From Macrostomum lignano (lineage: Eukaryota), in NCBI GenBank assembly GCA_002269645.1, contig NIVC01001234.1, positions 62,001 to 126,000 on the forward strand: a stretch of 64,000 nucleotides of DNA, written 5' to 3'. This document shows positions 30,401 to 53,000 of this stretch, in pieces. Each line of letters starts with the position of its first letter. Within the stretch, counting starts at the first letter, position 1. The notes below the pieces were generated by a model. The model saw only the letters and a program-made list of their open reading frames with translations. It did not search any database and was not told where the DNA came from. The translations under genes were made by a program, and so were the position numbers.

Positions 30401-33041
30401 AGCTGGGGTTTTACTGACCTGCGTGTGCCCACTATTTCTTTTTTAAGCACCTGGAATGTCTCACATTGGCTGCTTTGTTGACGGCCGGAGGCGCGATCTT
30501 CCAACTGTGGGAGGAAAAGGCAGCATAACTGTTGGAAGGTGCTACGGACTGTGCAAGAAAAAGGGATTCCGATTCTTTGGCGTTCAGATAGGAAAACAGT
30601 GCTGGTGCGGCAACCACTACGGTCGCTACGGCCGACGCGACAAACGCGAGTGCCGCTACCAGTGCAGAGGAGACAAGACGACCTACTGTGGCGGCTCCTG
30701 GAGAAACGACGTGTACGCTACCGGACTCGAAGAGCACGCCTCCGGAGTTACCCTACTTGGCTGCTTCCGCGACAATTCGAAGCGCGACTTGCCCCTTGTA
30801 CACGGCGCCGGTCACCGGACCACAAAGGCGTACTGTCTGAAGTACTGCAAGTCTCGCGGCTACAGGTACTTTGGCCTCCAGGCTGGATCTGCGTGCACCT
30901 GCGGCAACAAATATGGCAGCTTTGGCCGAGTCAATGCAAAGCAGTGCAGAACGCGCTGTAGAGGCGACAAAAGACGAACCTGCGGCGGCTCTTGGAGAAA
31001 CTCTGTCTACTCGACTGGAATCGGCAGCAAGCCTGTTCGTCGTGAGTACAACAGTACAGATTCGCAATTGATTGCTTTTTTGTCCACCTAGCTCGTGTTT
31101 ATATTAGTTTGCAGCTCTCAGTTGAGAACTATGCGATGCCTCACTAATTGCGCGCGCCGTTTCTCTTCCTTCCATAAATACGAGTAGTTTCAAGCAATAT
31201 AAGGTGGCTATTTTGAAATTGTGCGCAAATTAGTCTGACATCTTGAAACTTTAAATGCATTAAATATCATCAGCGAGAGCGTGGGCGTCCAAGAGTTGAG
31301 CCTTTCTCATAAGTTGTTTACATAAACGACAGCAAATAATGTGTACAGTAGTAGTCTGTCGCTACCGCTTTCAGTGCCCGGATTGAAGCATCTCGGCTGC
31401 TATCTGGACAAGAGCTCCAGAGATCTTAGAAAGCTGGTTCTCTCCGGATCAGTTACTGTGCCAAAGTGCTACAAGGCGTGCAAAGCCAGGAAATATCGCT
31501 TCTTCGGTGTGCAAAATGGCTACCAGTGCTGGTGCGGCAACCACTATGGCAGGTACAGAATCCGATCAAACTTGGAGTGCAGAGTACAGTGCAGAGGAGA
31601 CAAGTCGACCTACTGCGGAGGCGCATGGAGAAACAACGTGTTTACAACTGGATATAATCCGAAAGCCTCAGGTGGGTCGGTTGTACAGAATTATTCAGGA
31701 ATATAAAGTAGTTTCAAATGTGCGAATATTGCTTATATTTCAGTGAAAACCTGCCCATCGGGATCGAAGGCAAAGACTGTGAAGCGCCTTGTATGTGGCT
31801 GTGCCCCCGCTTCGGGATCTCAGAGGCTTGGTTCTTTGGTGATTGTTGTCGACACAACGGGCAGCATGAGCAGTGTTTATAAATCTGTCCGCCGTAGCAT
31901 TTCAAGGATTTTGTCGGCAAACAGGCGGTTCCAGAATTTTGTTGTTTCAAGCTACGGGGATCCTTATAAGCGGCACGTCATTCGAACAAAATCCATTTCG
32001 AGGGTTCAGCGATTTCTCAACGGGCTTAAAATTAGAGGTGGTGGCGATTGTCCTGAGTATTCAATGTCTGCCGTGATTGACGCGGCGAAATTGGCTGATA
32101 AAGATTCTGTTTTGCTTCTGTTTACTGATGCATCGGCTAAGGACCGCAGTTTGACGTCTAGTGCAGCAAAGTTGTTGAAGTCGAAACGAATTCGTTTTAT
32201 CGCAATCGGCAGCGGTCGTCTTTGTGGCCGCGGTGCTGAGTATGATGTTCTCGCGAAAAATACTGGTGGACTGGTAGCCAAGTTGAACCGTCGAGTTTCC
32301 GATAAGGTGACAGTTGAAATGGTATCTCTGTGACTGTACTTTTCCTTTCATTTTACATTATAACGTATTCGGATTTTTTAATTTTTAGGTGATGAAACTA
32401 ATTGAACTAGCAGCTAAAGGGAAAATGAGCTTCAGTGCTTTCCCGAAGAATACTCGCGATCTTGCTAATGCTCTGAGAGGAAGTAAGTTTTTAATCCGGG
32501 TTTATTGCTTCTACGAGCTATTTCTTATATTTTGTTGCGGCTGACGCTGCTTAATGTTTCCAAAATTATTTTCAGAATGCCCGTGCCGAACTGTGACGCG
32601 TCATATCTGCGCGATGCCACATTCAGGTGAGAGTCTGTAATAGTCTTTCTTCGGGTTGTGCATGTTGAGATTCTATACTCACGGGTTAATTTATTTTGCG
32701 GCTTTAGCGTCAGTGGTAATTAGATTACTTTCCTTTTACTTTAACAGTATGAATTTTGTTCATTTTTAGCTTCGCTTGGGTGCTTCCTGGACGATCCCAA
32801 GTACCCAGACTTCTCGGTTGTTGCTGGCCGGGGCAAGATGACAGTGTGGAAGTGCAACAACCTGTGCAAAGCTAAGAAGTTCTCGTATTTCGGTCTAAAG
32901 AACGGCTCGAAGTGCAGCTGCGGTGACAACTACGGAAACAGTGGCGGTGCAAAAGAGTCCAAGTGCAACAAACGCTGCTCTGGAAATTCCAAAGACAAAT
33001 GCGGCGGCACCGCGACCAATAGCGTCTACAAGGTTGACTAA
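9468..33041 (+). CDS. Giant modular WSC/LCCL/vWA extracellular protein, ~4,700 aa: WSC-(LCCL-vWA-linker)x9-WSCx12-vWA-linker-WSC
   Basis: Every exon has GT/AG borders and the phases chain from 9746 to the stop at 33039-33041. The reconstructed exons total ~14.15 kb once single-base lesions are corrected. The 5' start at 9468 (MLTKNALVVLLV, signal-like) is tentative. As assembled, the frame is interrupted at ~20421, ~21142, ~23091, ~23115, 25302 (TAA), ~27108 and ~29762. Confidence 0.75.
9746..10033 (+). CDS. First WSC-domain exon of the giant gene
   Basis: 288 nt, phase 1-1. Translation HGFEYKGCYKDSRNRDLP...CGRLC..YRYFGVQFSKECWCGN...ECNMACRGNSREKCGSHWRNNVY shows the 8-Cys WSC pattern. Confidence 0.85.
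10812..11141 (+). CDS. LCCL-domain exon (copy 1 of 9)
   Basis: The sequence contains the LCCL signature VWGSGIYTADSSLSKAAVHAG...GRSSYRSTRRNGV. Acceptor CGCTAG, donor GTAAGT. Confidence 0.85.
11293..11849 (+). CDS. Hemicentin/VWA7-type von Willebrand A exon (copy 1 of 9)
   Basis: Motifs IFVIDITGSM, VATFGDP, GGGDCPE and LFTDASAKD include the MIDAS-type residues. The ORF-track extension past 11849 is intron read-through. Confidence 0.9.
25228..31671 (+). CDS. Array of ten WSC-coding exons (12 WSC domains) in the order A-B-A-C-D-A-B-A-C-D'
   Basis: A: 25228-25533, 26230-26535, 28573-28878, 29575-29879. B: 25686-25982, 29031-29327. C (double WSC): 27104-27696, 30448-31041. D: 28030-28326, 31375-31671. 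All are phase 1-1. Periods are 1,002 and 3,345 bp. Confidence 0.85.
31744..33041 (+). CDS. Diverged vWA cassette and terminal WSC exon of the giant gene
   Basis: Exons are 31744-32306 (vWA: VVDTTGSM, GGGDCPE, FTDA), 32389-32482 (94 nt), 32576-32626 (51 nt) and 32770-33041 (WSC plus TAA). The 94-nt and 51-nt linker exons match the array cassette in size and phase. An ATTAAA lies at 33128. Confidence 0.88.
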
Positions 33042-34197: not shown

Positions 34198-37100
34198 ATG
34201 CCAGGCCGCGCCAGCGCGCTTTTCCTCATCGTGGCCTCCTTGTGGGGGGCCTGCTCTGCGGCTTCGATTCACGTTGGTAAGCTTCCTCTTCTTCACAAGC
34301 TTTCACAGGGATTCATTTTCACACTAAATTCAATGGAATTCACTGGAACTAGTGACTCCAACTTCAGGTGTTAGCGATCAGCAGAGCGTGCTAGACGAAT
34401 TTGCGGCTATGAACAGCAGTCAGTTGAGCAGCCTATTTGGAAACCATACCGTGACCTTTAAGCCAATCAACGTGCCTTCGGGAAGGACTAGCGCAGATAT
34501 TACAACTTGTGAGAGCTCTAACAAAAAATAATTAAGGTTGCTCATTTTACTCGTCATCTTCCCTCGCAATTTACCTTTGTTGTTTTGGGGTAGTTCGTGC
34601 ATTCGTGACACAAGTGAAAGTACGAGCTAAAGACTTTGCTTACTTCAATAAAGGTCGCACATTCCTCTTCTTTGATAAAAATATAAATCAGTAGCCATAG
34701 CCACAGTGGCCGTAGCTGGTCTTTGTGGTGCAGTACTGACAAAACCGACCCTCTTTCAGTTGTAAACTCCATCCGAAGCGAGTCATTCAGCCTAGTAATC
34801 GGCACCTTCAACGAGTTGCTCGCGTCTGCCTGCTCTTTTCTGACAATCCCATTCTATTCGCTGAGCGAGAAGACGCTGGACCCGGCGCTAACTTCTTCTA
34901 GCTACCTGAGCGACAGCACGACTCTGCTGGCAAATGCTCTGCTGGATGAGCTGATGCTAGCTTCTGTTAACCTCACGACTCAAGTCGGAAAGCGAGAAAC
35001 CATCGTCATGCTCGTTGACGATGTTGGAGCAAGTGAGTTTCACCGGGTCCGAACAAATACTCGTAGCTATGTTGAGCTTCCGCGACAACTAAGAACCAAA
35101 GCATTGTACCTCAAGCTAAGTGCAGGGTCTTTTCTACTCACAACTAAAAATCAAAGCATTGTACCTCAAGCTAAGTGCAGGGTCTTTTCTACTCACAACT
35201 AAAAATCAAATCATTGTACCTCAAGCTAAGTGCAGGGTCTTTTCTACTCACAACTAAAAATCAAAGCATTGTACCTCAAGCTAAGTGCAGGGTCTTTTCT
35301 ACTCACAACTAAAAATCAAATCATTGTACCTCAAGCTAAGTACAGGGCCTTTTCTACTCACAACTAAAAATCAAAGCATTGTACTTCAAGCTAAGTGCAG
35401 GATCTTTTCTACTCACAACTAAAAATCAAAGCATTGTACCTCAAGCTAAGTACCATTTGCTTCACTGCTCTCAATCTTACCCGCAGGGCTCAACATCCTG
35501 TTTGAGAGGAACATCACGCTGGAGTTTCGCATATCTGTGGTGAACTCCAGCAATAGCCCGGAGATTCGACAGCAGCTGTATGAAACAACTCTGTATTCAC
35601 CTGTAGATTCCACTGTCTACATGATTGTCTCAAAGCAGCCCGGGTTCGCGTCGAGCATCCTAAAAGAAGTATGATATAATCTAAGTTAGAAAATAGGCAA
35701 TTTAAATGTGCATAAAACAGAGAACCACTTTTTCACAGACATCCTTTTCTCTCATAGAAAGGGGTATTAAAATAAACATCTTTGGCCATAAAGCAATAAA
35801 ATGTATTTGTTTTTGGCCAAAAAGTTAGGATCAAATGTGAATACAAGTTAAAATCGGGAGTTATTCCCTATCCTTTTTGGGAGTTATTGGTGGATATTAG
35901 CCAATAAAGGTCTGTTTTGTCTGCTTTTGGGGGACATAATGTTGAGACTTTTGCATCGGTGTTCTGCTGCATGAATAATGGCTTCTAAAAACGCACCTAT
36001 TTTTATATCCTCGAGTCATTAAAAAACTTTGGTTGCGTCAAAATCAGGTCCAAAACTCGTTTTAACTTGTATATTTGCATAGGAATCCTGTATGACGAAA
36101 CGAATGTGTTTCGATGGAATCAAAGTTTTATTGAAAAAAACCTTTGCATCTTCATGCAGGCTGTATACCTCAGCATGTTGAAGAGCTCTGCCATCTGGAT
36201 CGTTCCGGAACTGGTAAAACTGCTCAATTGTATTAATTTTTACTCAGACATGTTTCGTGTATATATACTTTTTAATGTGCTTCACTGCCTCTATGCTATA
36301 GTTTCTTGATCAAAGCGAGATTCTCCCCTTCTATGCCACGGGAGCGAGCATCATCACCTTCCGGCTGCCGAACCCTGCAATCACTAATGATGCCCAGCTC
36401 AACATGTCCCTGGCTAGTGACGTCATCTCTCACTTCATCGCCAGCTATGAGAAGAATGTCACTAACGCCACTATTATGGAAAAAATTTTCATGGTACGCT
36501 CATCATTTTTTTAAATGCGCGATGCAAAGAAAACCCAGAGTCTCTTGTGATCTATTTTGATAACGAGTTAGTACCCAAGGACCAATCAATTAGAAAAACA
36601 CGAAACTACGGTCCTTGGAAGTTTTTAGGAGGCAGTTTTACCGAAAAAATACATTACGGAGAATGGAGCTTCTCTTTTATAAGCAAAAAATGTAAATTTC
36701 TTTTGATAGCAGACAACATTTTCATATTTTGGTACGACTTAACTTTCTAATAACTCAATTGACATTTGTAGAGCTTTTTGTTTGAAAAATTTGAATTCTA
36801 TGTTAATTTGATGTTTATGTCCTACCATAAAATTAAATGGAAACAAATTAAGGTATATTAAAAGTTTAAAATTGGGTCTGCCTTCTACTAAAAGCAATTA
36901 CAAATTTTTGCTTACAAAATGAGAACTTCCATTCTCCGTACTGTATTTTTCAGTAAAACCGGCCTCCTAAAAGTTTCCAAGGACCGTAGTTTCCTGTCCT
37001 TCTACTTGACTAGTCCCTGTCAGTACCACGATTCAGACTATTGAAGCATCCCATCACTCTGAGGGAGAATCTGGGAAACTGAAATTGCAGTGACTTTGTC

Positions 37101-40100
37101 TTCCTGTTGGTTTCCAGCTGCTTCTAAGACACTTCTACCCATCTAGCCATAAATGAAAGTCTTGCAGGCCTCAGATGTCACAATATACTCACCGTTTCGC
37201 TTGTTGCTCCGCAGACAACCACCGTCGGATCAGTGTCGATAATGCACTTTAACTCGGTGGACAGACGTCTGGACATGTTCGCTGCTGATCTGATGAGCGT
37301 GGATTCTGGCTCGGCGACAAATCTGACGCTGGTAATTCGGACACTTAATTTGCCGGCTGCATTTTCAAACTTTAAATCACAATAATGCTATGCATATGTG
37401 AGTGTCTGATTCGGCCAAGCACTGGAAAGTGGGATGTCAACTGCAGTTGGAATGGAGCCAGAAGTTTAGCTCTGGACCAAACCGACTGCAATGACCGGAC
37501 CTAACGTGCCCGACCAGTGCACAGGCTCGCTGGGAATTGAGTTATTGATTGCAGTCGGTTTGGTCTCGAGCTTTACTTTGTACTGCATTCTAGAGCCTGA
37601 AGTTCGACTGAAATCCAAAGGAAGCAATTTGAATGGGGTGTCTCGGTGTTTCTACCGGTAGTCTTTAGTTGCCAGAGTTAACATTCCCTTTACCGATTAC
37701 TTCTGTTCTATATTTGAGCTGAAACTGAATCAACTTGTTCTGCTCTGCAGTACGCCACGTGGAACGAGTCGGTGTCAAACAGCCTCCAGTCCTCGAGAAC
37801 GAAGGAAACTCTGAAGTTGCCGGTGCTGCGCCTCGCCGGAGATTTGGTAAGTGAATTTCGCATTGCTGCAACAATTGAGTTTAAATCAGCTGATTTATTG
37901 GTTATTTGCTCAGGTACACTCAATGCCGTAACGTCAGCCTTTTTTGCTCAAGGTGCTTTCATCTTTAGTATGCTATGAGCACATTAGCTAATATGCGACT
38001 TCGACATCGTGTGCCGTAAATTCTAATCAAGCGATGCAACTTGTTCCTCCCCGTTAGGTAAAGCCTTACCTGATGGGAGTGTCTGGTGGATATTCTGGCT
38101 ACAGCATTAGTGTGCTGGAGAAGATCAGTAAAGACTTGTTCACTTACGACCTAACCAGCTTGAAGCTTGGACCCAACTACTTTGAGTTGGTCCAGAAAGG
38201 GGTGAGATGCTGCAGCAAAGTTTTTTCGCATTCATTTCTTTAATATTTTGTCAGAGCCAATAGAATAACTAGATATGTCATTCGCGATAAATGTAGTTTA
38301 AAAAAACTGAGTGCCTATCATCTTGAGCCTCCTACTCTGTCCTTCAATTGGGCGACGAGTGACTGGAAGTTTTTGAGAAACATATCGTCAGCCCCGCCCT
38401 AACTGGGGGTTACCTCTCATTCCGCCAAAACGCGTTTTGCCGGAAAGGTCATTTCACAACCCGCGACGGAAAATTATTGCTCTATGGGTGGGACGCAGCT
38501 AAGACAGTCGAGAGATGTCTATGGCCTAGAAGCGAATTCGCACATGAGAGCAGAAAATCCTGCTGTGCTCGCTTTTAGAGTAGAAGATAAACTCGTAATA
38601 ACACTGAGAGCACCGTGGCTCAAGCAGCTATTATACGAGCTGAGTGTATATCTTCCATCTATCTACAGTATCGGTCTGATACGCTCGTGGTTAGAAACTA
38701 TTGACCTTTTCGGCGAAATGCGTTTCGGCAGTACCCCCCTACTGGGGGTTGTGGGAGCTTCAAAAGCTTTGAATATCCCAAAATTAAAACCTTTTATTTC
38801 CCTTTTATGGTTAAAAAAGCGACTACATCTTTTTTAGACTGAAAAACATAATCGGCATTGAAAAAGCCACCCTAGAGAATTGGCAGAAGTGGCGGTTTTC
38901 AATGTTGCCGAGTATCAGATGAACGCATTTTTCGGGAGTGACATACCCAGTTATTCTAGTATCTGTGGTTTCCATAAGCACAACACTCAATTCATTCGCT
39001 CCGTAAACCTCAGGAAGCAGACATGACAGTTAACCTGGTGGAGCTGACAACAGCCCATATCAACGACACGCGCGTCTCATTTAGTGAGGTCCCATTGATG
39101 AGCAGCGGTGTCGCCGCCATGGGAAGATCGGCCATTAAAGAAGTGGACTTCCTCAGCCCCTTGTACCCGCTCACATGGAACGTTTGGTTCGCCATTATCG
39201 CAGCCTTCATTATCTTGTCGGCCACGCTATACCTGACGGACAAGATCAGCCCGAACGACTACAAGCGACCGAAATTCAGCGTTGCCAAGGCGGCCTTTTT
39301 TGTTTATTCCTCATTCGTAATGTCGAAGCTGAAGTCCTCGGCAGTGAAGCCAAGCTCTCGGATTTTCATTCTAATTCTGTGGTTCGCCTCCCTGATGTAC
39401 TGCACAACGTACGGCACTAATTACTTTTTCCTTCTGATTCGCACCAACCCGAACCTACCGTTCACGAACATGCAAGGCCTGTACGATGAGAGAGACAACT
39501 ACGAACTGCTGATGGTTCAGAACAGCACGGAGTACGCTTTGATGCGAGCGCAGAACTCCAGCTCTGTGTACTGGAAATTGGCCGCGTCCCCGCCAACTTT
39601 CGTCCCCAGCATCGAAGCGGCTGCCAACATAGTAAAGAACTCGACCCTGCCAGGTCGGAAGAAGCCGATCTACATCGGCGATGAGCTCTCGGTGAATTAT
39701 TACGCGGCTGGCGTCTGCGAATTAAAATCCGCCGGCAAGGGGGAGCTCTCCCGGAGTATGCACATCGTGCTCAGCAGCTCTTTGGACAAGAATCTCATTA
39801 GTAACATCAATAACCGCATCCAGGAGCTCAGCGACCGAGGCGAGCTAGAGCAGATAAAAAATAAGTAAGTAAATTGATGGATAGTTACAATCAAAGCTGA
39901 TAGCGTGTCGCTCCCGACCTTCGTAATTGTGCTAAGTTACTACCGGCCTACCGGCACTTTTGTGACCTGAGCTACAAAATTTTGAACCCATTGATGTTGA
40001 TAAATGGAGAAGCTTTCGAACCGACACGAATTCAATCGCTCCTTTTCAGTTACTGGTCCGTGCTGCTCTGCTCAGCTAGTGAGAACCTGATCACCTATTC

Positions 40101-41037
40101 CGAGCTAACAGAGGTGACAATCGACCAAGTTGCGGGCATCTTCATGGTGCTTGCGGGCGCTTTTGTCCTGTCATTCCTCGTAGTAGCAATGGAGTACATT
40201 GGCTACATAATCGGGCTTCAGGTTCAGCGAACTGTAAGCTGCCATTACTGAATGCTTTTTTATTGCTTCATGGCAATTACATTTCTGATTGCTTCCCTCG
40301 GATAGTCTTACTACCCACACTACCCAGGGGCTGTAGCCTAGTGGTTAGAGCGTCGGACTCGCGACTGAAAGGTCTGGGGTTCGATTCTCGATCCCACTTG
40401 GAATAATTTGTGTCCTTGAGCAAGACTTTAACTCTTCATTGCTTCAGTTCACCCAGCTGTAAAATGGGTGCCAGCATTAGCTAGGGTAACTGAGGGTGTG
40501 TGGCGACACCCCAGTCCTTGTACTGAACAGCCGTACGCAGCCTTCAGATGCGCCGCGCAATAGCTGCGGCTGAGCTATCGGTTGCACATCTGCTGATTGG
40601 TGCAGGTGTAATCAATTATTGTTATGTCACTACCCATGCTACTTTGTAAGTAGCATATTGTGTAAATAGTATGATGTCACAGCAACGTTTTACTCTGGCA
40701 GAGAGCCGACCCGGACTTGGAATTTAACAAGGCCTACCGCGCCATCGTCACCAGCATCACCCCGACCGGAGTCTACGTGAAGCTGCACGGCGAGAAGGAG
40801 TTCATACCGAATCAGATGCTGTCCCCAGATGCGTCCAAGGTGAGGCCTTATGCTCGCATGCTATATTTGGGCTTGAATCCAAAATTTGCAGACTGCTTAC
40901 CAACTCTTTAAACAATCACACAATTGCAGGGCATGACAGCCTCGGATCTGCAGATTTCATGCGGCTCTATGATCGAGATCACCTACCTGGGCAACGATCC
41001 CGCCGAAGGCTACCGAATCTTCCACAGGCGTGGCTGA
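34198..41037 (+). CDS. Divergent ionotropic glutamate receptor-like channel with a C-terminal S1/OB-fold domain, 852 aa, 13 exons
   Basis: Exons: 34198-34276 (signal peptide), 34368-34508, 34760-35032, 35487-35668, 36160-36213, 36302-36493, 37215-37331, 37751-37846, 38058-38201, 39014-39864, 40050-40233, 40702-40839, 40930-41037. They total 2,559 nt with consistent phases. iGluR landmarks: M1 PLTWNVWFAII, M3 SSRIFILILWF, S2 INNRIQELSDRGELEQIKNYW, M4 DQVAGIFMVLAGAFVLSFLVVAMEY. AATAAA at 41053. The N-terminal-domain exons are less certain than the core. Confidence 0.85.
35098..35452. repeat. 55-bp intronic minisatellite, ~6.4 copies
   Basis: Unit AAAGCATTGTACCTCAAGCTAAGTGCAGGGTCTTTTCTACTCACAACTAAAAATC, in intron 3 of the iGluR gene. 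Confidence 0.95.
36571..37026. mobile_element. Fold-back/MITE-like element with long imperfect terminal inverted repeats
   Basis: GAAACTACGGTCCTTGGAA...TTTAGGAGG...TACGGAGAATGGA (36602-36665) is mirrored by TCCATTCTCCGTA...CCTCCTAAAA...TTCCAAGGACCGTAGTTTC (36928-36994). The arms extend to at least 125 bp. Confidence 0.75.
40327..40620 (+). mobile_element. tRNA-derived SINE with a Deu/Nin-like core (copy 1)
   Basis: A box TAGCCTAGTGG and B box GGTTCGATTC, then GTGTCCTTGAGCAAG...CACCCAGCTGTAAAATGGGTGCC and an AT-rich tail. It is highly similar to 48049-48390. Confidence 0.8.
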
Positions 41038-42677
41038 GACACTCGGGCGCTGAATAAAGTTGCTGCTATTGCGAACGGTTGTTGACTTTGAGGACTGAAT
41101 TGAGGTGCACTTTTAAAACTCATATGATCTCAAATGTAATATTTATTCAGCAAAAGTATCATCTTCGATACCTTTGTTACCAATATTTACTGATGATTAA
41201 GAGCGTACTATCGGTAACAAGTATTTATTAACGCTCATATTAATGCAAAACTGGTCAATAAAATAATCTTCACTATATATCATGCTACTATGCCAATATA
41301 TTATAAAAACAGGCTGTTCGTATGAACTTTCCATGCGGTGAATCCGCTATGCCGGATAGAGTATGCACAAATGAATTTGAGTTGTATAAACAGAGCGTTC
41401 ACTACACTAGATTCAAGTCGAACGGTTAGCGGATGCCGTACTTAAAGCTATGAGCATATGCCAACGGCCCCGAAATACTTCGTACGGCTCGTATTTTGCC
41501 TTTAAAGCTCTCTTCGACTCCGCACAAGTTAATCTTTCCTACGATTGAATGACAAAAGATCTTGCATCGAAAGTTTACGTTGCATTCGAAAATCGGCCCA
41601 ATGCTTCCCAACGAAAACCTTCGCTGCAAAGTTTTCACAGGCTTAGGTATTTACATAAGATATGTTTCAACCATGTTTCCTTATACTGCCACCCTTGCTT
41701 CTCGTAAAATCGAAACAGTCACTGCAGAGGCGGAGTCTCCGTGCAGACTTAAGGCTGACACGCCCAGACACTGGGAGCAGTAGAAGCATGCGGCAGAGAC
41801 AGCAGCTGCCATGTAGTGAAACAAGCCCCGTGTCGACCCCACTTCACTTTGCGTCGCTCCTGCAATTATGTCCCCCACCCCACCTCTAAAGTCAATTGTT
41901 GGGCCTACGCTCTGACTTAACTCTTTAGCTGAAATGATTTTGCCGAGAGCCTCTGAATTGCGTCTAGCTGGACTGGAAATCTTGGGAGCAGCCTCGCGAT
42001 CCTCTGACTCTGTGGGCGTCAGCGTCAGCGTCTGGCAAACTTCTTTTGTAACAAAAGATGTTGGGGGGAGCCTGCATGAAAGCAAGGCATGCGAGGTGTT
42101 TTCTGAATGACAGCAGGTTGGCAGCTCTGCTTGGTTGCTTTAGAAAGTAGATTTCAATGTTGAACAGCAATACTTTACGTGTACTTACTGAATGAGAGGC
42201 TACGGTTGCAAGTGAAAAGGGGAGCCAGAGACACACAGAGAGAAATATATCAATCGAGAAGATAGTAGCAAGCCAAGATAAGTGCGAAAATGGGACAAAC
42301 AGACGAAGAAGAAAGGGAGAACAAGCAAGGAAAAATATAGGGAAGGATTTAAGGCCGCATTCGAGTGGAGCACGTCATTCATGCATGCTGCCTGTGCTCT
42401 GTAAAACAAGGAAAGGACAGGAATGCTAGAAAGAAACAAGAACAAGACAGGAGGCCCGGACCCCGCCCCTTTCATTGGCAGTCAGCAGAGCTGTCCAATC
42501 GCCGTTTCCCATGCTTGGTAGCGCCTGCAGTAGGGAAACCAGCGCCTTTGCTCGACAGCTGCTTGCCTGCCTCCGGTTAGCTTTATTTCTCGCCCGTCTC
42601 TCGCAGGCTACTGATAGACCGCGCAAGTATTGAATCGGAAAAGCTTCTTGGTCCTCGACATCTTCAGCACCTGCACG

Positions 42678-45600
42678 ATGTGGTCTTCTGTTGCCATGGC
42701 AACACCTGGTCAGGGTATGACGCTACCGATGCAGCGAAACGACAGCAACGTGTCGACAGGAACGGTTACGTTACCGGCGGGTGACAACGTAACTGCGCTG
42801 GCATTTCAAGCCCGCTACGGGTATTTGCACATCGTTCTGACCAGCTGCATCCTGGGAGTCATCATTCTGTGCACCATAATTGGCAACGTGTTTGTAGTGG
42901 CGGCTATTATCCTGGAGAAGAACTTGCAGGTAAGGTCTGACTCCCCGACTTGTTCAATGCATCGATATTTTAAAGACAGGGTATTCCAAAGTTCATAAGC
43001 GCTAAGTTGTACGTAGCCATTCATTTTCAAGGGTGGAACTGCTTGACTGGCATTGTATTGATTTTGCTGACACTGATTCTTTTAAGTACTTCTGGTCTGT
43101 TGAAACTCTTTACAGGGTATAGACGTCTCAGGGTGTGTTGAAAAACTGTTAAAGCTTTGAGCTCTACAGCAAATAGACTACGTCAAGTATTCAAAATATA
43201 CTCCTATTTTACTTATAATGCGGTAGAAAAAGCGAATTTCTCCCCCTGTAATTCGTCAAACATGGTGTATAGAAAGTTTCTCCCATACACGTACAACTAC
43301 AACTACAAAATACAACAAATAGCAAAAATATGCTCTCATCAGTAGGTCTGAAAACAGCCCTGAAATGACAGTCAGTCAGAAACCCTTGCTACTGCTACAT
43401 CCTCGGTTTCAAATGCATAATGAGAAGGCATTTTTGGTGAAAATTGGAGAAAAACTCTTGAAAAGTGGTCCAAAATTGCCCGGGTTGTGAAAGCTTCTCG
43501 AACTTCTTTAGAGTTTTCCAAATCGCGTTGTGCTTATTCTTGCGATAGCCAGTTTGCATCAGTTCAGACGAGTTAACCTTGTGTAGAGAATATTGCAAGA
43601 CTTGAGCTTTCATTTATTTACGATAAAATTATTAAAGAAACATAAGCCACGAGTTTCTTTGTGATCGCGTGAGGGGTACAATTTCTGCTCCAAAAATAAC
43701 TTTGCTCTATCTGAGCAACTCGACTCCTTTGTGCTTTTCGGTTCACTACTCCATTGCTCATGTGAGCACTTGAAGCGAGCAATGGACTGCACGCGGAAGT
43801 CTTCATTGATATAGCTTGAACTCTAACGATGGGAAAGCATGGCATCATAAATGATGGCCCTCTTGAGATCCGAAAAGCATGACAATCAAGCAACGGGGTA
43901 TCACTTGCAGAATAAAAATGTTTTCACGCCAATTTCGCATCCTTCTTCGCTGCCCAGCCTTTGCTTGTCTCACCTGGCTCATGAGCACTTGTCTAATCTT
44001 TGCTTGTCTCACCGGCTCATGAGCACTCGTCTAATCTTTGCTTGTCTCACCGGCTCATGAGCACTCGTCTAATCTTTGCTTGTCTCACCGGCTCATGAGC
44101 ACTTGTCTAATCTTTGCTTGTCTCACCGGCTCATGAGCACTCGTCTAATCTTTGCTTGTCTCACCTGGCTCATGAGCACTTGTCTAATCTTTGCTTGTCT
44201 CACCTGGCTTATGACCACTTGTCTAATCTTTGCTTGTCTCACCTGGCTCATGAGCACTTGTGTAAATGGGGAAACCCGGTGGTAAACCTCTGGCCTCAGC
44301 TCAGAATTGTGCAATTTCTCACCGAGAGAAAGCATTTTCAGCCTCTGGTGATCGGAGTACCGTTTCACTTTTTCGTCAACTGCTACTCAAAACAGCCTCC
44401 GTTCCCACCTGAGCTCAGAGTTCTGCCAGTCCAGCATGCAATGCTCTTAGAAGGAGGAAGAAAGGAAAGGTGGAGAGCAAGAGAAGAGATGGAGAGTATT
44501 CCGATGCGGCAGTAAATTGGCTGATGCTTGATGAATAATTGAGAATCTAATCGGTATCCAGCCTGCTTCACCCATTCTTCTGCCCATCTGTGCTTCGGTT
44601 TTAACTTCAACTTGGTCCTTCCTACCTAGCAACCTTGCTTGCGATCGCGACTGGCTCGCTGTTGATCTTTACGAGTATGCCTCCTTGCGACGGTAACTGG
44701 ACCAGACTTTGACGGATTATACACAATAAAATCACGCGCTCGTAAAAATCAATCGACTTCTACGAGTCACAAAACGTCATTTCTTGAGCTGTGACTCGCT
44801 GCAAACAGGAAGCAGTAGATTTAACAGGCCCGCAGTTGGCTGAAGAGGCTTCGCGAGGGAGGAACACTCCGCCGGATTGCAGTTTTTCCTTCTCAGCAAG
44901 ATGCCATTGCATTGTACCCAACCTGCAATGTTTTCGCGCAAGAAACTGCAAAATTTAGCCGGTTTACTTCTTGCTGTGCAGCTTGGAGACAAGACGCGGC
45001 ACTTTTACGCCATGCCCTTCAGATGCACTTCCAAGCCTCTACTACGCTCGTACACGTTAAGACTTAGTAAAAGTCATATAAAAGAAAAGAAAGGCATAAA
45101 AGTGGTCATAAAATCAACCGTTAGCTTTAAATTGGGACTGGTGCAAAGAACCTACGGTCCAGATGGTTGCGATGCTTCCATCGGCCCGGCGGCCTTCGCA
45201 GCCGATCAAAACGATCCCCCGTTTGTGTGTAAGGAGATGAAAAAGAAAGCCGATTTAACCCTGCCTGTCCATTTGCTTTTTTGACTTGGCGGCGGAATCC
45301 GCAGTTCTGGCAGAGAACTGTTCAGCTAAAACTACTCAGTAATTCGAAAATCTTCTTTGGTGGCAGCATCCGTAAAGGACATGGCTACCATCTGCATTTC
45401 AATCTATTAAGACTGGAATTTTAGTTACTGAAGCAGAAGAGGAAAAAATGGCAGCGAGTACAAAAATTGGCGAGTTTGGTGTGGCCAAACCGGATTAATA
45501 ATAGGAAGCCTACGAAGAGCGACTTAAGCAATTCCTCGTCGTGAATAAAGTGACTGAAGCGAGCGAGCCTGATCACAGTGATAGCCAATGACTGATATCA

Positions 45601-47011
45601 ATTGCAACGCAGCTTGCTATCGCCTGCTTGCTATGGATGTGGCTTACGAAGATCAAGTAAAGATGCTGAGGGAACACTTTAGCCCAGGGGTTGGCCAAAC
45701 CCCGGCCCGCTCGAGGTTTTTGTCTCTTCTCAGATTTCTTCCATTTTTCTCCTCTCCTCCCCTCTCCTCTCCTTTATTCCCTCGCATCTCCTTTCTCCTA
45801 TCTCTCTACTCTATTCTCTCTTCTCAATTCCCTCTCCTCTCTGCCCTCCCCTGGTCAGCAGTCATGCACTAGGTTCCCTATCTGGCCCGTGAAAAAAGAA
45901 AAGTTTGCCGACCCCTGCTTTCGCTCGAAGCCGAAGATTTTCGTCAGATCCGACATGAATGAGAAACAGTGAGTGACTTTGTTGCAAGTCTGCGGAGTTT
46001 GACAGCCACTTGCGACCACGAAAACTTTCTGAAAGACGGGTTCGTCGTTGGCCTCAGGAACAGGCTCATCAAGCGGCGTTGGCTACAGGAAGAGAAGCTG
46101 ACCCTGGCATGCGCACTAACGTTAGCGACTGCGATGGAAGCAGCAGAGCGAGATGTCGTGACTATCGCCTCCTCCAGAAACTTGTCGGTCATGGTGTCAA
46201 TTTCTCGAAAGAAACTAACAAATAATCTACTTCAGTGCAACATGGGAAAAGGAGCCGCATCCAAGATGGACTCCGCCCCATCAGTATATCATCAAATTCA
46301 AAAGAAAAAAGGATCATTCAAATGCTGACGCACTTTCGCGTCTATCAGTGCCTTGTGTCTTGGAGGTCAGGCTAGAACTGCTACCAGTGAATACAGAAAA
46401 GATGCAAATCGAAACGAAGATTCACAGCTTCAGATAGTTGTTCGATACTATTAAAATGGTTGGCCAGAAACCTGTGAGCAAGAGTTGGAACAGTACTTCA
46501 GGAAGCGGAACGAGTTGTGCATTGAGCATACTTTGGGGAGTACGAGTCATTATTCCAAGGAGCGTACAACAGATCGTGTTAGAACTGCTTCATGGTAGAC
46601 ATCCAAGAATCTTTGCAAAGAAATCCATTGCTAGACTGTATGCATGGCTCCCAGGAATCGACAAGGCCATAGAAGCCCTATTCCGTAGTTTTGAAGGCTG
46701 TCAGCTGCAAAGGAATTTGCAATAGCCATGAAAGAGAAATGGTATTGACGACTATACTTTCGACAATTGGGCTTGTTTCAGCTCAATTTATAATCAATGT
46801 CAAATTCACTTGAGCACGTTGTTTATTGTTTTTTTCCAGTATAATTTTGTCAATAAAACGCTCAAACACTCTAAGGACTTTTTTAAGGACTTTTTCGTAA
46901 TTATATAAGAAACTGAGAAAATTTGCAGAACCCCAATTCCGAAAATTCATCGGGATCCCGATCCCGAACCCCGACCTAACCCGAACCCTGAGCACTCCTG
47001 CTCTAGACTTT

Positions 47012-47049
<38 letters not shown>

Positions 47050-50000
47050 AGATGGATTCCTGCTGAAGCTGTGGTCCAGTATTCTATGGACTTCTGGTCA
47101 ACAGGCAAGTCTGGAAGCGACACATCGATCAAATCATCAGAGCATTGTCCAGCCACCGCCCAGTCTGAAGGACTCAGAGCAACTAAACTAACTCAGAGCG
47201 AGAGCGGCAACTCAACAAATCAACTCAAATGACGTCAAGCCAAAAAGAGACCCAGGCAAGGATGACTAGGATCACACTGATGGCAAGGATGACAAGGATC
47301 ACACTGATGGCAAGGATGACTAGGATCACACTGATGGCAAGGATGACAAGGATCACACTGATGGCAAGGATGACAAGGATCACACTGATGGCAAGGATGA
47401 CAAGGATCACACTGATGGCAAGGATGACAAGGATCACACTGATGGCAAGGATGACAAGGATCACACTGATGGCAAGGATGACAAGGATCACACTGATGGC
47501 AAGGATGACAAGGATCACACTGATGGCAAGGATGACAAGGATCACACTGATGGCAAGGATGACGCTGATCCTGGTCAAGAAGCATGAACGCGAGGACCTT
47601 GGGGGATAGAACCAAGTTGAGCAAACCGCATCGTTCGCAATACAGTTACTAAATTTGGATTACTGACAATGCCACTTTTTATTGAGAAAAGGGGGAGTGC
47701 ACGAGTATATGAGCTGCATTACACATTAAATTTATACATTATACACTACAGCGCCCAGCTCTATGCTCTTGACAAGCTGCGACTAAAGTAGAAACAAGCA
47801 GTTCAAGTCGAGGCCGCTGAATAAAATTTAAAATAATTCGCTTTGCCCAAAACATTACGGCCAGCTCATGGAAGTCTCTCAAGACTGGAATCGCAGTTAA
47901 TACAGAAGTAGAAGCATACAGGCCCTCAGTAAAGAACGTATCTGAATAGTGTCGGTTGTCAGTCAATTTGTCACTAAAAACATTGCCTCCTGACATATGA
48001 CGTAGTTTCTAAGATGCAACTACGAGTATTAGCTACCCTAAAAATATAGGGGATTGTAGCCTAGACAATCCCAATTGTAGCCCAGTAGTCAGAGCGTCAG
48101 ACTCGCAACTGAAAGGTCGGGGGTTCGATTCCCGATCCCACTAGACACAATTTGTGTCTTTGAGCAGGACACTTAAATCTGCATTGCTTCAGTTCACCCA
48201 GCTATAAAATGGGTGCCAGCATTAGCTGAGGTAATTGAGGCTGTGTGTGGCGACCCCCCCCCCCCCAGTCCTTGGACTGAACAGCCGTACGCAGCCTTCA
48301 GATGCGCCGCGCAATAGCTGCGGCTGAGCTGTCGGTTGCACATCTGCCAATTGGGGCAGGTGTAATCAATTACTATTAATATTATTTTTTTATTATTGTT
48401 ATGAAGAGGCAAAAAGTTCACTGAGCTGAGCTTACTGAGTGTAGCAAGAAAGTGGAAATTGCTGAGATTCGGGTCATTAATCTTTAAATTTCTTTTACTA
48501 TTTTGCTCAGAAACCCGCCATGGGAGCAGGGGTCTGCGGGTATAAACTAGCAGCCGGAGAGACTCGGCTCATTCCCAGTCCACGTCTTCTCCTCCGCGAG
48601 AGCTGGAACCGGTTTTTGAGTGGGGTTAAAATTTGCATTCACGTCTCGACTGCCCGACCTGCAACTCGAAGAGGAGGCCTTGGCTGGAACGCGGGGGGGG
48701 AGTTTTAAAATTCAAGCTGATGCAGAGATGCACTTCTCCCGTTGTGTCTGTGTTTGTGACTCGGTTTATAGTGAATTTCAGTTGAGGTCATATTAGTCAA
48801 TTCACTTTCTCTCCCATTTATCTGGAGCGCAACTTTCATGCCAGCGGCAACTTTCTCCTCAACACAGCAATTCAACAAGCTCTAAAGGAGAAACCCTAAA
48901 AAGTTACGGAATGCACGAAGCAGGAAAAACAGTCCACACTGAAAGCAAGGTGTGGACCACACTGAAACAGGCAGAAAGGAAGGAGTGGCTTGCATCACGA
49001 GGGTGCTGAAAAGTGAAAGCGAAAAGAAAACTGGGCGGAGAAGCCAACCAAGCTCTGCTTCTTCCATTATTCTAGAAGCAAGCGGGAATCAATCAGTTTG
49101 GCTGAATTAATTATTAAGCGACTGTAAATAATGACGGCCAGGAGCAGCTCACCGGCTGACGCACCTGCCGTCCCAGTCGCAACATGCGGCATTTCTCCCC
49201 TCCCTCTCCTCCTCTCTGTCCATCTCTTTCCACAGGAAGAAACACACTTGAATGCCGCAAGAAGTCTGCGCAGATAATAAGGAAAAAGCGATTCTACAAA
49301 AGGGAGAATAAAGGAAAACAGTCCGCTCCGTAGGCGTGGCCTTGTTATCTTTCTGATTGCAAAACAAACTCGTGCAGCTCCTCAAGTCCCTCCCCGCCTC
49401 CCTGACCAGCAGCTCCTTAGTCCCCGAAGTGCAGCCATACTTGGATCTTAGCCTATAGTTTTGCGAAGTACAAGCAAATCATTTCTGAACCAACCAACGC
49501 CTCAGCAGCAATTGCAGCCTATGTTAAAAGGGTTCCTCATGCCTATGAAGACGTTGGGTTAGATGCAATTTTTGTGAAAATGCACTGCAGTTCCGACTAT
49601 TTCAGTCTGTTCCCATGCCTCAATCTTCTCTGTCTCACTTCAGCCCCTTGAACTTCTGTCAGCCACCTGCTTGTGTGAAATGATGAGGACTGGCCTCTCA
49701 GCAGCCCATTGTCAAACTCGCGAACGGCTCTTCTCTCCCTCACCTGTTCTCACATGAGCCTGGGAAACTTACCACTCTGCCCATGGGGGGAGGGGCTTGA
49801 TGCAGCTGGGGAAAATATGTGTTGAAAAGATGGAAACAAACAAAGTCTGATAATTCACAAGGCTTTGCTTTATTGATTTCTATTCCCAAGCAGGTTTGGA
49901 AATTGAGGCATTGAGATCCAATCCAGACTATTCTCATAATCAGGGTTTAGCGTGCAGTCCACAACTACACTTTCCAAAGTGTTATGGATTTGAGAACATT

Positions 50001-53000
50001 CAAATACTCTCATTATTTGAGAACATTCGTTTCACCCGAAACTCGCTTTTCCAGAGCGTGTCCAACTACCTGATCGTGAGCCTGGCCGTGGCCGACCTCA
50101 TGGTGGCCACCCTCGTCATGCCCATCAGCGCGCTGAACGAGCTGTCGAAGTACTGGTGGCTTGGTAAGGCTTAGTTGTGCCCGCCGCCACTTCAAGCCCT
50201 GTGCCAGGCCTTCTGGAAGGCCTCGATGATGTGGTGGTGACTGTGGCCTGACTTTTGATGACGCTTGAAAAATTTCTCCCTATCGCTAAGCCCAGTGCAG
50301 TCGGGACGCTGCACTCGACATCAACTAGTCCTCCCCCATTCTCTTTCTCCCTCGGGCTATCGTTGCGAAGTCCCAATGGGATCAGCCAGTTGGTCCCGCG
50401 CTGCACTTGCTCGCATGCATGCCAAGCTGCTGGATTTCTCCCCCTCTCACTCTCCCACATTTGCTCTGCGCTCGTCTTCAACCGTCGTGGCCGCTTATGA
50501 CAGCTGAAGCTTCCCGTTGCTTCTCTCGGCTCTGCCCCTTCCCCTCTCCCTCTCTCTCGGTCCTGACAACAGTAAGACCCTCTCGCATGCTAGGGAGATT
50601 AGCAGACAGAAAAGTTGCCGCCCTGCCGAGGGAGAGCAGGGGAGTGAGAGCAGGAAAGGGGAGAAAACCGCGAACTGGCGGGGCCCCATTTGAAAATTGG
50701 AAGCCCGGAGCCAAAGTCTTTCTTGATCGAAAGAGCCCTCCCTCTGAACTGGCAGCTAAGCGGGAGACGAAAGGCCCGCAGCAACTGCCACCCTCACTTT
50801 TAGATATGGGGGAAATTTCTGCAAAAAGACAGACCTACGCAACTTTGAGTTTGGGGATTTTTACCAGAAATTTGCTTCCTCACTGGTTGGCGGGAAATGA
50901 CTGGCTGGAGGCAGTCAAGCAGGGGAGGCTTCGATCAGTTGTTTTGTCGCGCGCGCGTGCCCAACCCGCTTTGGAGACTCTGAGCAGCAGGCAGAGAGGC
51001 GGATCGAAGTCATTCACGGAATAGGGAAGCGGGCATGGGGACAGCCGGAATGGGAAAAGAAGATCACTTATCAGGGAGGCCCTCATGCGAGCTAATGCGC
51101 GGTGACACTGTCTGGGGGGCTGGCAGCGGCTGTCTGAATTTGTCAGCTGGTGGCGCAGTAGGGCAGAATTAAGAAGCCAGTCGGCCTTGTTGATATGGGA
51201 TTTTTGAGTTTACAGATTTTTTTCTCCCGCAACCACCAGCAAATCCCAAAGAAAATTGTTTGTGTTCTTGAGCAACAGCATTTTTCTAAATATTAGTGCG
51301 CCCAACTCTATGCTTCGTGATTTGGGATAAAACTCTCAGGTTTTTTAGCTCAAAACTTTTGGCAAGAAATGCATACAATTATCTTTTTAAATGGTAAAAA
51401 TGACTACATCGAAGCATTAAAAATGGCTCTATAAAACCAATAACAATGACTCAATCAAATCAGTAACAATGACTCAATCAAATCAGTAACAATGACTCAA
51501 TCAAATCAGTAACAATGACTCAATCAAATCAGTAACAATGACTCAATCAAACCAGTAACAATGACTAAATAAAATCAGTAACAATAACTAAATCAAATCA
51601 GTAACAACGACTCAATCAAATCAGTAACAATGACTCAATCAAATCAGTAACAATGACTAAATCAAATCAGTAACAATGACTAAATCAAATCAGTAACAAT
51701 GACTAAATCAAATCAGTAACACTGACTCAATCAAATCAGTAACAATGACTCAATCAAATCAGTAACAACGACTCCATCAAATCAGTAACAATGACTCAAT
51801 CAAATCAGTAACAATGACTCAATCAAACCAGTAACAATGACTAAATCAAATCAGTAACAACGACTCCATCAAATCAGTAACAACGACTCAATCAAATCAG
51901 TAACAACGACTCAATCAAATCAGTAACAATGACTCAATCAAACCAGTAACAATGACTAAATCAAATCAGTAACAATAACTAAATCAAATCAGTAACAACG
52001 ACTCCATCAAATCAGTAACAATGACTCCATCAAATCAGTAACAATGACTCCATCAAAGCGTGGATTATGAAAAAGGACATTAGCCAGTTTTATTCATGAG
52101 AACAGTCAAAACGCTAAAGGATTGATAATCTGTCTCCGATCCCGTGGCCAAGATGGTTGCCTGAAGGATTTCTTAATCCGGAATCAAGCAAAGACCCCAC
52201 TGAATTTTGAATTCGTTACGGACCAGCTTGTTAGAAAGGACTAATATTTCTAAGAACTTTCTCGGAGCAGCTGTGCCAGCAACCGTGGCGCTTTGAATAA
52301 GTGCTAAAAATACAAAAAAGTCGTAGCACTGCTATACGTTCGGATCTAAGATTGCCGCTGCATCAGGGAGGCTGGAGAGTTATAATATAGTTACTTTAAA
52401 TCAAGTTGACTTTAAGAGGACTTTGACTTTTAACCTCGATCCCTCCAATAATAAATCCCACCATGGATGTTCGTCCGTTCTTGAACCATTACTTTAGAGT
52501 CTTGCCCCACCCAAACATGTTTAAGTTATTTTTAAGTATCAAATTAAGAGTACATTTAAAGCCTTCGAAGCCCCCTCCCCACCCGGCACAGGTATCCACC
52601 TGTGCGACCTGTGGATCTGCTTCGACATTCTGTGCTGCACGGCGTCCATCCTGCACCTCGTAGGCATTGCGGTTGACCGCTACTGGGCTGTCACCAATGT
52701 CAACTACGTTCGGGTGCGCAGCGGCAAGCGCATCGGCCTCATGATCGGCGCCATGTGGGCGATCAGCATGGCCATCAGCATCCCGGCCAGGTACATGAAC
52801 GAGGAGAAGCGACGAGGGGCGATCCGCAAAGGCGAGTGCAACATCAACGACGGCTGGTTGTACACCATTTTCAGCACGGTGGGCGCCTTCTACCTACCCA
52901 TGCTGTTCATGATCGCCATCTACATCCGCATCTACCAAGCGGCTCGAAAGCGCATTCGGAAGAAGGCCTTCAAGCACCCGCAGGCCCCGTCCGCCACCGC

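Follow-up and report, generated by a model that had tools for sequence, protein, structure and literature searches.

In a 64,000-nucleotide stretch of Macrostomum lignano DNA (contig NIVC01001234.1; hereafter the window), I analyzed a gene of the ionotropic glutamate receptor (iGluR) superfamily, which lies on the + strand between roughly 34.2 kb and 41.06 kb. It was found that positions 40702-41037 are, with high probability, the 3′-terminal coding exons of this gene, and that the C-terminal tail which they encode is an S1/OB domain descended from PNPT1 (mitochondrial PNPase). A preliminary description of the same DNA had proposed such a tail, and its translations of the two exons proved letter-for-letter correct at 40702-40839 and 40930-41037. 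When the exons 39014-39864, 40050-40233, 40702-40839, and 40930-41037 are joined, a single open frame results.

The large exon (39014-39864, +) was defined by its Lig_chan match and its collinearity with GluA2. It encodes the end of ligand-binding lobe 1, M1, the pore loop (M2), M3, and lobe 2, and it ends at a phase-2 donor (AATAA/GTAAGT; a slash marks a splice site). The M4 exon (40050-40233, +; ..NYWSVLLCSASENLITYSELTEVTIDQVAGIFMVLAGAFVLSFLVVAMEYIGYIIGLQVQRT) was aligned with M4 of GluA2 and ends in phase 0 (...CAG CGA ACT/GTAAGC). Reading through this donor would add VSCHY before a stop at 40251 (QRTVSCHY). The following intron (40234-40701, +; 468 nt, GT..AG ends), which is absent from the spliced contig described below, leads to the acceptor ttttactctggcag/AGA (...tctggcag/AGA) directly 5′ of 40702. 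In translation, S1 exon a (40702-40839, +; RADPDLEFNKAYRAIVTSITPTGVYVKLHGEKEFIPNQMLSPDASK; RADPDLEF...SPDASK) encodes a linker and strands 1-3 of the S1/OB domain. Directly 3′ of 40839 lies the donor AAG/gtgagg of a 90-nt phase-0 intron within the S1 domain (40840-40929, +; GTGAGG...TTGCAG by sequence reading), whose acceptor (...attgcag/GGC) lies directly 5′ of 40930. S1 exon b (40930-41037, +; translated as GMTASDLQISCGSMIEITYLGNDPAEGYRIFHRRG; GMTASDL...RIFHRRG) encodes strands 4-5 with the PNPT1-type Y(L/F)GxDP motif, and then the stop codon TGA at 41035-41037. An AATAAA polyadenylation signal (41053-41058, +) was read 15 nt past the stop. The phase-0 end of the M4 exon at 40233, the read-through peptide VSCHY with its stop, and the AATAAA after the stop, all noted in the preliminary description, were confirmed in the sequence.

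The 81-residue tail alone was compared with 177,635 PDB sequences using phmmer. Only human PNPT1 was matched significantly (E=1e-5), in an alignment that spans its entire S1 domain (chain residues 631-702). A profile of ten receptor tails, built without PNPase sequences, also found human PNPT1 (residues 629-708, E=2.8e-15), and its next matches were far weaker (Rrp5, 6e-5; ribosomal protein bS1, 3e-3; and a bacterial PNPase). The Pfam S1 family was matched individually by seven of the ten receptor tails (best E=3.1e-5). The tails and PNPT1 have in common the motif LEFG..Y near the start and the motif Y(F/L)G.DP..G near the end. An AlphaFold2 (AF2) model made from a 12-sequence alignment has a pLDDT of 84.7 and a five-strand pattern (strands 11-19, 23-28, 31-36, 60-68, and 75-79; short helix 37-40). 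Among the 50 best Foldseek matches listed from PDB, all look like S1-domain proteins to judge by description (E 1.4e-4 to 3.5e-3, probability 1.00, best TMq about 0.7); those listed include bS1, Rpb7, PNPase KH-S1, eIF2alpha, GSP13, RNase II/R, Tex, SPT6, DHX8, and human PNPase (33% identity). Thus, because of the profile, Pfam, and Foldseek matches and the shared PNPT1 motifs, the tail is a PNPT1-type S1 fold, and by sequence its nearest relative is found in animal PNPT1, namely the S1 domain of that enzyme. The predicted fold is a five-stranded antiparallel S1/OB barrel in which a helix links strand 3 to strand 4.

Some results weigh against this assignment. The window tail by itself matches Pfam S1 (PF00575) with E=0.0011 and 19.7 bits, below the gathering score of 22. 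The 12-sequence input alignment for AF2 contained two PNPT1 S1 sequences, and the first AF2 model, made from three sequences, had a pLDDT of 66 and gave no significant Foldseek match (E about 1). A word-indexed protein search gave no match with the 81-residue tail alone and no significant match with the ten-tail alignment; the relatives were recovered by a chimeric-query search and an exhaustive profile search. The preliminary description had proposed an S1/OB fold aligning with the PNPT1 S1 domain, and searches with the last 81 residues bear this out in PDB, in Foldseek, and, below the cut-off, in Pfam.

Do the channel and the S1 tail form one gene? The C-terminal 426 residues of the joined window exons were used as the chimeric query. 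It returned two proteins, P0001 and P0002, each of which runs through the M4/S1 junction. P0001 is 82% identical to the window product (89% at the amino-acid level in the M4 exon) and comes from a 1369-nt Logan contig (L001, SRR28338165). The L001 DNA matches the window in the blocks 39014-39867 (L001 30-883), 40051-40231, and 40735-40841, with the introns missing. Since the introns are missing, L001 is a spliced, mRNA-type sequence. Its splices are equivalent to 39864/40050 and 40233/40702, and by eye also to 38201/39014, as its first 29 nt read ..YFQSVQRG, like the end of the exon 38058-38201. Across the M4/S1 junction it reads ...GLQVQRN-RANPNLEFNTSY... (...LQVQRN-RANPNLEF...).

P0002 is the M. 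lignano protein BOX15_Mlig026429g1, which is 52% identical to the window product and has the whole tail. Its locus (L002) has the same exon structure (M4 ...YWHRM / KVNSRLEF...PTK / KMTAADL... and a stop), with the counterpart of S1 exon a at 5425-5571 and the intron within the S1 domain at the same position (PTK/KMTA). S1 exon b of the window resembles P0002 and the remaining receptor tails, and AF2 modelled the segment that it encodes well. Moreover, L002 is collinear with the window, including two downstream exons of G-protein-coupled receptor (GPCR) type; 42795-42941 and 50046-50168 of the window match 9305-9451 and 15097-15219 of L002 at about 82-86% nucleotide identity (blastn). Thus, the synteny of the receptor locus is conserved. 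Between the window and L001, the ratio of nonsynonymous to synonymous substitution rates (dN/dS) was calculated as 0.048 (S1 exon a), 0.04 (M4), and 0.083 (remainder), at a dS of about 1.3-1.8, which is near saturation. These values indicate that purifying selection constrains the tail as strongly as the channel core, and the value of 0.05 on the S1 exon indicates that the tail is translated and functionally relevant.

Taken together, the comparative evidence excludes that the two parts are juxtaposed by chance, that the S1 exons are a decaying piece of PNPT1, and that the junction is a chimera of transcript assembly, and it supports placing these exons in the iGluR-like gene. The preliminary description had taken the S1 exons as the tail of the channel. 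This holds in the spliced L001, in the syntenic P0002, in genomic contigs with a single open reading frame (ORF; see below), and in the dN/dS of about 0.05. It had also named observations that would speak against such a tail; none of these was encountered among the sequences of the relatives, where an M4-S1 splice is seen in L001, or in the profile and structure searches, which gave S1 matches. There are points on the other side. Past ...DASK, L001 runs into an intron-like sequence that starts with GT, so the last splice (40839/40930) is not shown by L001. Use of the 40233 donor in the window is inferred from the relatives, and no protein in the searched collection is more than 82% identical to the window product.

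In the exhaustive search with the tail profile, 1.84 billion representative proteins gave only 32 hits at E≤1e-3. A single-stretch, near-full-length match to the tail was found at the C-terminus of five proteins with Pfam Lig_chan, namely M. lignano A0A1I8HFD1 (783 aa), Schistocephalus solidus A0A0X3NVQ4 (P0009, UniRef100_A0A0X3NVQ4; 949 aa, Lig_chan 578-842, S1 tail 865-942), Hymenolepis microstoma CDS33345.1 (918 aa, named 'GRIK1'), and the taxonomically unassigned P0017 and P0027. In the fragments P0008, P0018, and P0024, an M4-like hydrophobic segment is followed at once by the tail (by eye); a Pfam scan of P0008 and P0018 found no family. Outside the receptors, the nearest hits were to true PNPase fragments, namely P0015, in which Pfam recognizes RNase_PH and PNPase, and a PNPT1-like protein of a spider. 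Some long proteins (among them P0003 and P0004) were hit in several separate stretches, and these hits were discarded as spurious; a Pfam scan of P0003 showed it to be a WD40/STAND protein. The ten aligned tails are mutually about 30-50% identical and represent a multi-copy family. The database name of A0A0X3NVQ4 is 'Polyribonucleotide nucleotidyltransferase 1', a mis-annotation that masks the architecture. The existence of an S1-tailed receptor family accounts for this name, since the tail presumably gave the best automatic match.

Genomic DNA gives the same picture. In contig L003, the whole 857-residue receptor P0017 and its S1 tail are one uninterrupted ORF. In L007, P0008 is a 298-residue C-terminal fragment that ends in the tail, also as an uninterrupted ORF, and the same fragment is found in L007-L009. 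Since M4 and S1 lie within a single ORF in L004 and L007, skipping of the tail is impossible there. The Schistocephalus genomic contig L010 ends before M4. L003 and L007-L009 are Logan contigs from the runs ERR14224704-06, which include ERR14224705 and contain PacBio HiFi metagenomic DNA of a coral sampled by Tara Pacific (PMC13083261). The GC content at third codon positions (GC3) is 0.65-0.68 in the ORFs of L003 and L007 and 0.71 in the window gene, and the flanks are AT-richer. A cnidarian origin of these contigs was considered; their GC3 is closer to that of the window gene than to that of coral coding sequences, which hints at a flatworm source and not coral.

Thus, judging from the sequences, the fusion is old, as it is present in Macrostomorpha and tapeworms and in several paralogues. 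The preliminary description knew of no other iGluR-S1 fusion. As for the literature, this stands, since full-text searches gave no paper describing an iGluR with an S1, OB, or PNPT1-like tail. As for uniqueness of the locus, it does not, because the search for proteins with Lig_chan plus S1 gave five further ones, including those of M. lignano, Schistocephalus, and Hymenolepis. The same architecture thus exists at other flatworm loci, where the databases leave it unremarked.

The channel part is a divergent iGluR. The large exon and M4 match Pfam Lig_chan (PF00060) with 61.2 bits (cut-off 30.8) and E=1.3e-16 over profile positions 1-145 of 146. One continuous alignment to GluA2 (residues 460-790, E=2.7e-19) runs collinearly through lobe 1, M1, the pore loop, M3, lobe 2, and M4; delta-1 and GluN2B were also matched. 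By sequence, the gene is assigned to the iGluR superfamily. The Arg that holds the alpha-carboxylate of the ligand (R485 in GluA2) is aligned with an Asn in the window (...ELTTAHINDTRVSFS), while P0017 retains an Arg at this position (by eye). The gate motif SYTANLAAF has become TTYGTNYFF, in which only Y, N, and F are kept, and P0001 and P0002 have the same variant. The pore-loop sequence also differs from that of GluA2. Since the alpha-carboxylate Arg is replaced by Asn, glutamate is probably not the extracellular ligand of this copy; the membership in the superfamily is unaffected. Thus, the name 'glutamate receptor' in the preliminary description fits the fold, as seen in the Lig_chan and GluA2 alignments, and not the ligand, as the glutamate-binding Arg is missing.

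Where did the tail come from? It is likely, to the same high degree as for the exons themselves, that its ancestor is the S1 domain at the C-terminus of animal PNPT1. For intron positions, a spider PNPT1-like gene was used (L005, Oedothorax gibbosus CM033278.1; P0019), in which phase-0 introns flank the S1 region and also interrupt it. The spider boundary ...LLNKE/EDPELEY is one codon from ...QRT/RADPDLEF in the window, and ...LDYGI/VHRRK is two codons from ...DASK/GMTAS. L005 has one additional intron, which is absent from the flatworm genes. These positions suggest a capture of the terminal exons of PNPT1 as DNA rather than via cDNA. They agree within one or two codons and not exactly, which tells against such a capture; thus, it is suggestive only. 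P0019 itself (KAG8192000.1, 356 aa, 'S1 motif domain-containing protein') is apparently a gene model that is either chimeric or truncated. To the eye, the last exons resemble the KH and S1 end of PNPT1 with unrelated sequence before them, and no Pfam family was found in P0019.

The window gene, as read from its sequence, is not a PNPase and has inherited only the S1 domain of one. The exons upstream of S1 encode Lig_chan, in place of the two RNase PH, alpha, and KH domains that precede S1 in a PNPase. In a tblastn search of the whole 64-kb window with P0015 and the spider P0019, no other PNPase exon was found, the matches being confined to 40690-41031; P0015 alone, a fragment that extends from the PNPase/RNase_PH domains through S1 with the first RNase PH domain outside the query, had its sole match at 40708-41031. 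The absence of KH and RNase PH exons upstream, noted in the preliminary description, agrees with this search. The possibility that the receptor gene is nested in a PNPT1 intron was rejected, as this search found no other PNPase exon in the 64 kb and the upstream 24 kb is an array of LCCL, VWA, and WSC sequences. The preliminary description had also called the M4/S1 intron mostly a short interspersed nuclear element (SINE). An interspersed repeat of about 300 bp does cover 293 of the 468 intron bases (40332-40624), and a second copy lies at 48076-48378 (87% identity). Neither ARAGORN nor Rfam found a tRNA-like part in it. Thus, its identity as a tRNA-derived SINE was dropped, and 'interspersed repeat' alone is supported. 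The repeat is not present in the M. lignano locus L002.

The S1/OB domain, about 80 residues in length, would lie on the side of the membrane that is cytoplasmic in all known iGluRs, as judged by homology. In four family members, a spacer of about 21-25 residues (counted by eye) lies between the conserved acidic residue that closes M4 and the first barrel strand. If the receptor is a tetramer as other iGluRs are, four S1 barrels would be placed just under the inner pore mouth, since the tether is short and the C-terminus would be cytoplasmic. The domain is presumably a cytosolic binding module instead of a disordered scaffold tail. An RNA ligand would tie the receptor to an mRNA or a ribonucleoprotein (RNP), or would let RNA modulate the channel.

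What might the tail bind? By analogy, RNA, and probably structured RNA as for the S1 domain of PNPT1, is the leading candidate, at a probability somewhat short of even. In six of the ten receptor tails the net charge is +5 to +12. Eight of the ten have a Trp or Tyr in strand 2, two residues past a conserved Gly, where the PNPT1 sequences have Met or Lys; in classical S1 domains, this position is occupied by Phe22, which stacks on bases. The RNA-contact residues of the E. coli PNPase S1 domain are Phe19, Phe22, His34, Asp64, and Arg68, and these sites were mapped onto the tails by eye. At the Phe22 position there is an aromatic residue, which in the window is Tyr, and the Asp64 position is retained (GNDP). 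Several features weigh against RNA. The Phe19 position is Thr, the His34 position is Pro in most tails, and the Arg68 position varies between Tyr and Arg. The invariant or near-invariant columns (Gly, Leu, Tyr, Val, and Phe) read as core-like, and the net charge is -1 in the window tail and +1 in its M. lignano counterpart. Structured RNA is a ligand of the S1 domain of PNPT1, which is also a docking site for the SUV3 helicase (PMC11851098). Because of this docking, a protein partner is a serious rival for the ligand, with a considerable minority share of the probability by the same analogy. What remains falls to binding of an inner-leaflet lipid or a polyanion, or to a purely structural ring.

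The fuller reading, that the channel binds RNA directly via its own polypeptide and that the four barrels hold mRNAs or RNPs for local translation, or that RNA gates or modulates the channel, is tentative and, on the sequences at hand, rather unlikely. As part of the same tentative reading, the coupling of channel and RNA would be hard-wired, would have arisen early in flatworm evolution, and would persist in parasitic tapeworms.

An S1 barrel without RNA binding might be a protein-protein module that serves assembly or tetramer stabilization, export from the endoplasmic reticulum or trafficking, or docking of a cytosolic partner, as in the pairing of PNPT1 S1 with SUV3. I regard this as a substantial possibility, though below even. 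The interaction of the human PNPase (hPNPase) S1 domain with SUV3 is independent of RNA affinity (D713Y; PMC11851098), whereas the residue aligned with D713 is not conserved in the tails (by eye), and no partner is known. The loss of several classical RNA-contact positions, the invariant columns that read as mostly core, and the tails of the window and M. lignano, which are not basic, fit such a module. Yet most paralogue tails are strongly basic (+5 to +12), and the paralogues have gained the Trp or Tyr at the strand-2 site that stacks on bases in canonical S1 domains. The same basic charge and the conserved aromatic residue, which is of an interfacial type, could also be read in terms of the membrane. 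Basic, Trp-bearing barrels on the inner leaflet might bind PIP2, phosphatidylserine, or small polyanions, or form a gating ring, and so modulate gating. The tether past M4 is short and nearly constant (about 21-25 residues in four family members), and hPNPase S1 domains can pack as a cap over the central channel (PMC11851098). However, this improbable reading is entirely inferential, and the window copy is not basic. It also counts against it that I know of no S1 domain that is a lipid binder.

The remaining explanations concern the gene structure. It is improbable that the S1 exons occur only in a minor or alternative isoform while the main product ends by read-through just after M4 (QRTVSCHY). 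The read-through does reach a stop after five codons, and L001 shows that intron-containing molecules of this family get assembled. But the donor (ACT/GTAAGC) is near the consensus, no AATAAA follows the read-through stop, and the read-through peptide is not conserved (ASSSVKYG... in M. lignano). Furthermore, the dN/dS on the S1 exon is 0.05, and M4 and S1 share a single ORF in L004 and L007. It is scarcely credible that the S1 exons are an artefact or an unrelated remnant, such as a decaying fragment of a duplicated PNPT1 or a part of another gene that lies downstream in a compatible frame. Chance alone would give compatible phases roughly one time in three, and the M4/S1 intron carries a mobile repeat; against this stand the spliced M4-S1 junction in the relative L001, the C-terminal tail on Lig_chan proteins from M. 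lignano, Schistocephalus, and Hymenolepis and within single ORFs of genomic contigs, and the syntenic M. lignano locus with the same exon structure. The intact ORF with canonical splice sites, stop, and AATAAA, the dN/dS of 0.05, and the search that found no other PNPase exon nearby likewise speak for an S1 tail that belongs to the receptor.

Upstream of the large exon, the gene model becomes less certain. The exon 38058-38201 (+; VKPYLMGVSGGYSGYSISVLEK...NYFELVQKG), assigned to ligand-binding lobe 1 by homology and splice sites, resembles residues 30-77 of P0002 (tblastn, E=0.001) and 2374-2517 of L002 (tblastx). The exon 37751-37846 (+; YATWNES...KLPVLRLAGDL) would be the start of the ligand-binding domain; it has phase 0 at both ends, a ctgcag/ acceptor, and a TTG/GTAAGT donor, and is weakly similar to residues 18-28 of P0002 (KLPILRVLTFM). 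A tentative first coding exon (34198-34273, +), with an ATG, a signal-peptide-like MPGRASALFLIVASLWGACSAAS, and the donor G/GTAAGC, comes from sequence reading alone. Against this part of the model, a Pfam scan of the upstream candidate ORFs (34.2-36.5 kb) found no family, so that the first exon is without homology support, and tblastn with eight family members gave no match in the window upstream of 37.7 kb. In the upstream candidate ORFs of this tentative N-terminal model, Pfam did not find an ANF_receptor domain, and Lig_chan-Glu_bd lobe 1 scored 12.8 bits (cut-off 30). Thus, the N-terminal half of the gene model (5′ of about 37.7 kb) is tentative and without support. A minisatellite with 55-bp units (35085-35451) lies within an intron of the receptor gene.

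The rest of the window contains several other features. From 10700 to 25000 (+), and on to about 33000, a 1584-bp unit is repeated in tandem about nine times with near-identical sequence, and every copy has an LCCL ORF and a VWA ORF (for example, 10787-11152, Pfam LCCL, 2.5e-15; 11268-12047, VWA_4, 3.7e-34). Several WSC ORFs lie 3′ of the units (for example, 25685-26077, WSC, 7e-20), and the ORF 31707-32330 is VWA-like by eye. This array is either a giant gene for a repetitive extracellular protein or the result of a very recent tandem amplification, or possibly an expansion in the assembly. Exons of rhodopsin-type GPCRs were found at 42618-42995, 49854-50171, and 52525-53559 (+) and at 58398-59174 and 60730-61122 (-). 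The ORF 52525-53559 matches 7tm_1 (1.8e-47), carries DRYWAVT, and is biogenic-amine-receptor-like; 58398-59174 matches 7tm_1 with 4.3e-11, while 60730-61122 is GPCR-like by eye only. Retroelements have left two remnants, a gag-like ORF at 6570-7085 (-) that contains a CCHC zinc knuckle and is sub-threshold (20.6 bits, cut-off 20.8, E=4.4e-4), and an Integrase_H2C2 fragment at 46438-46722 (+). Besides the one in the receptor gene, minisatellites are located at 3903-4499, 43959-44265, 47255-47563, 51394-52057, 55880-56256, 56852-57294, 62810-63285, and 63666-64000. Their periods are 18-159 bp with 82-98% matches, and several of them yield long spurious ORFs.

As far as is known, a folded tail of a nucleic-acid-binding type is a new architecture for the iGluR superfamily. 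It is a functional invention and not an oddity of one locus, because it has been kept from macrostomids to tapeworms and in several paralogues, with a dN/dS of about 0.05. Since the family occurs in cestodes and was not seen outside flatworm-like sequences, it represents a lineage-restricted receptor class. It is also a case of domain capture from the gene of a housekeeping mitochondrial enzyme. I know of no other channel that carries its own RNA-binding module. If RNA binding is true, this would be the first such channel, and local translation at receptors could be tested in M. lignano, a tractable flatworm with RNAi and transgenesis. If protein binding is true, an RNA-binding fold would have been re-used as an accessory domain of a channel.

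The tail can be compared with several known systems. The S1 domain of PNPT1 (PDB 9kjr, 9kjt, and 9njb) is its best sequence match and shares with it the LEFG..Y and Y(F/L)G.DP..G motifs and the predicted fold. PNPT1 also has RNase PH and KH domains, whereas none were found in the window, and its S1 domain sits on a trimeric mitochondrial exonuclease, while that of the receptor would sit on the cytosolic side of a membrane channel. In strand 2, PNPT1 has Met or Lys, and it has a His, where the tails have Trp or Tyr and mostly Pro, respectively; most paralogues are more basic. Canonical iGluRs (GluA2, kainate, delta, and NMDA receptors) have the same Lig_chan domain, the same collinear order of lobes, M1, pore, M3, and M4, and, by homology, the same cytoplasmic C-terminus. 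Their known C-terminal tails are disordered, with PDZ ligands, phosphosites, and similar short linear motifs in place of a folded nucleic-acid-binding domain. In contrast, the window gene has Asn for R485, the TTYGTNYFF gate, an altered pore loop, and a folded S1 tail. Arthropod ionotropic receptors (IRs) and IR-like receptors, which are divergent chemosensory receptors, are also alike in that they keep the iGluR fold, have lost the canonical glutamate-binding residues, and have diversified rapidly into many lineage-specific paralogues. IR-like genes have reportedly been found in schistosomes, and to my knowledge no IR has a folded C-terminal domain. Cytosolic domains are found on channels of other families, namely the TRPM7 kinase, NUDT9-H of TRPM2, and the cyclic-nucleotide-binding domains of CNG and HCN, and Slack (KCNT1) binds FMRP. 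All of these differ from the S1-tailed receptors in both the channel family and the domain. Slack and FMRP are a precedent for a link between a channel and an RNP; there, the RNA-binding protein is a separate partner and not a part of the channel polypeptide. In TRPM7, TRPM2, CNG, and HCN, as would be the case in the S1-tailed receptors, the channel has a folded cytosolic module beneath its pore, by which it is linked to a ligand or to machinery inside the cell.

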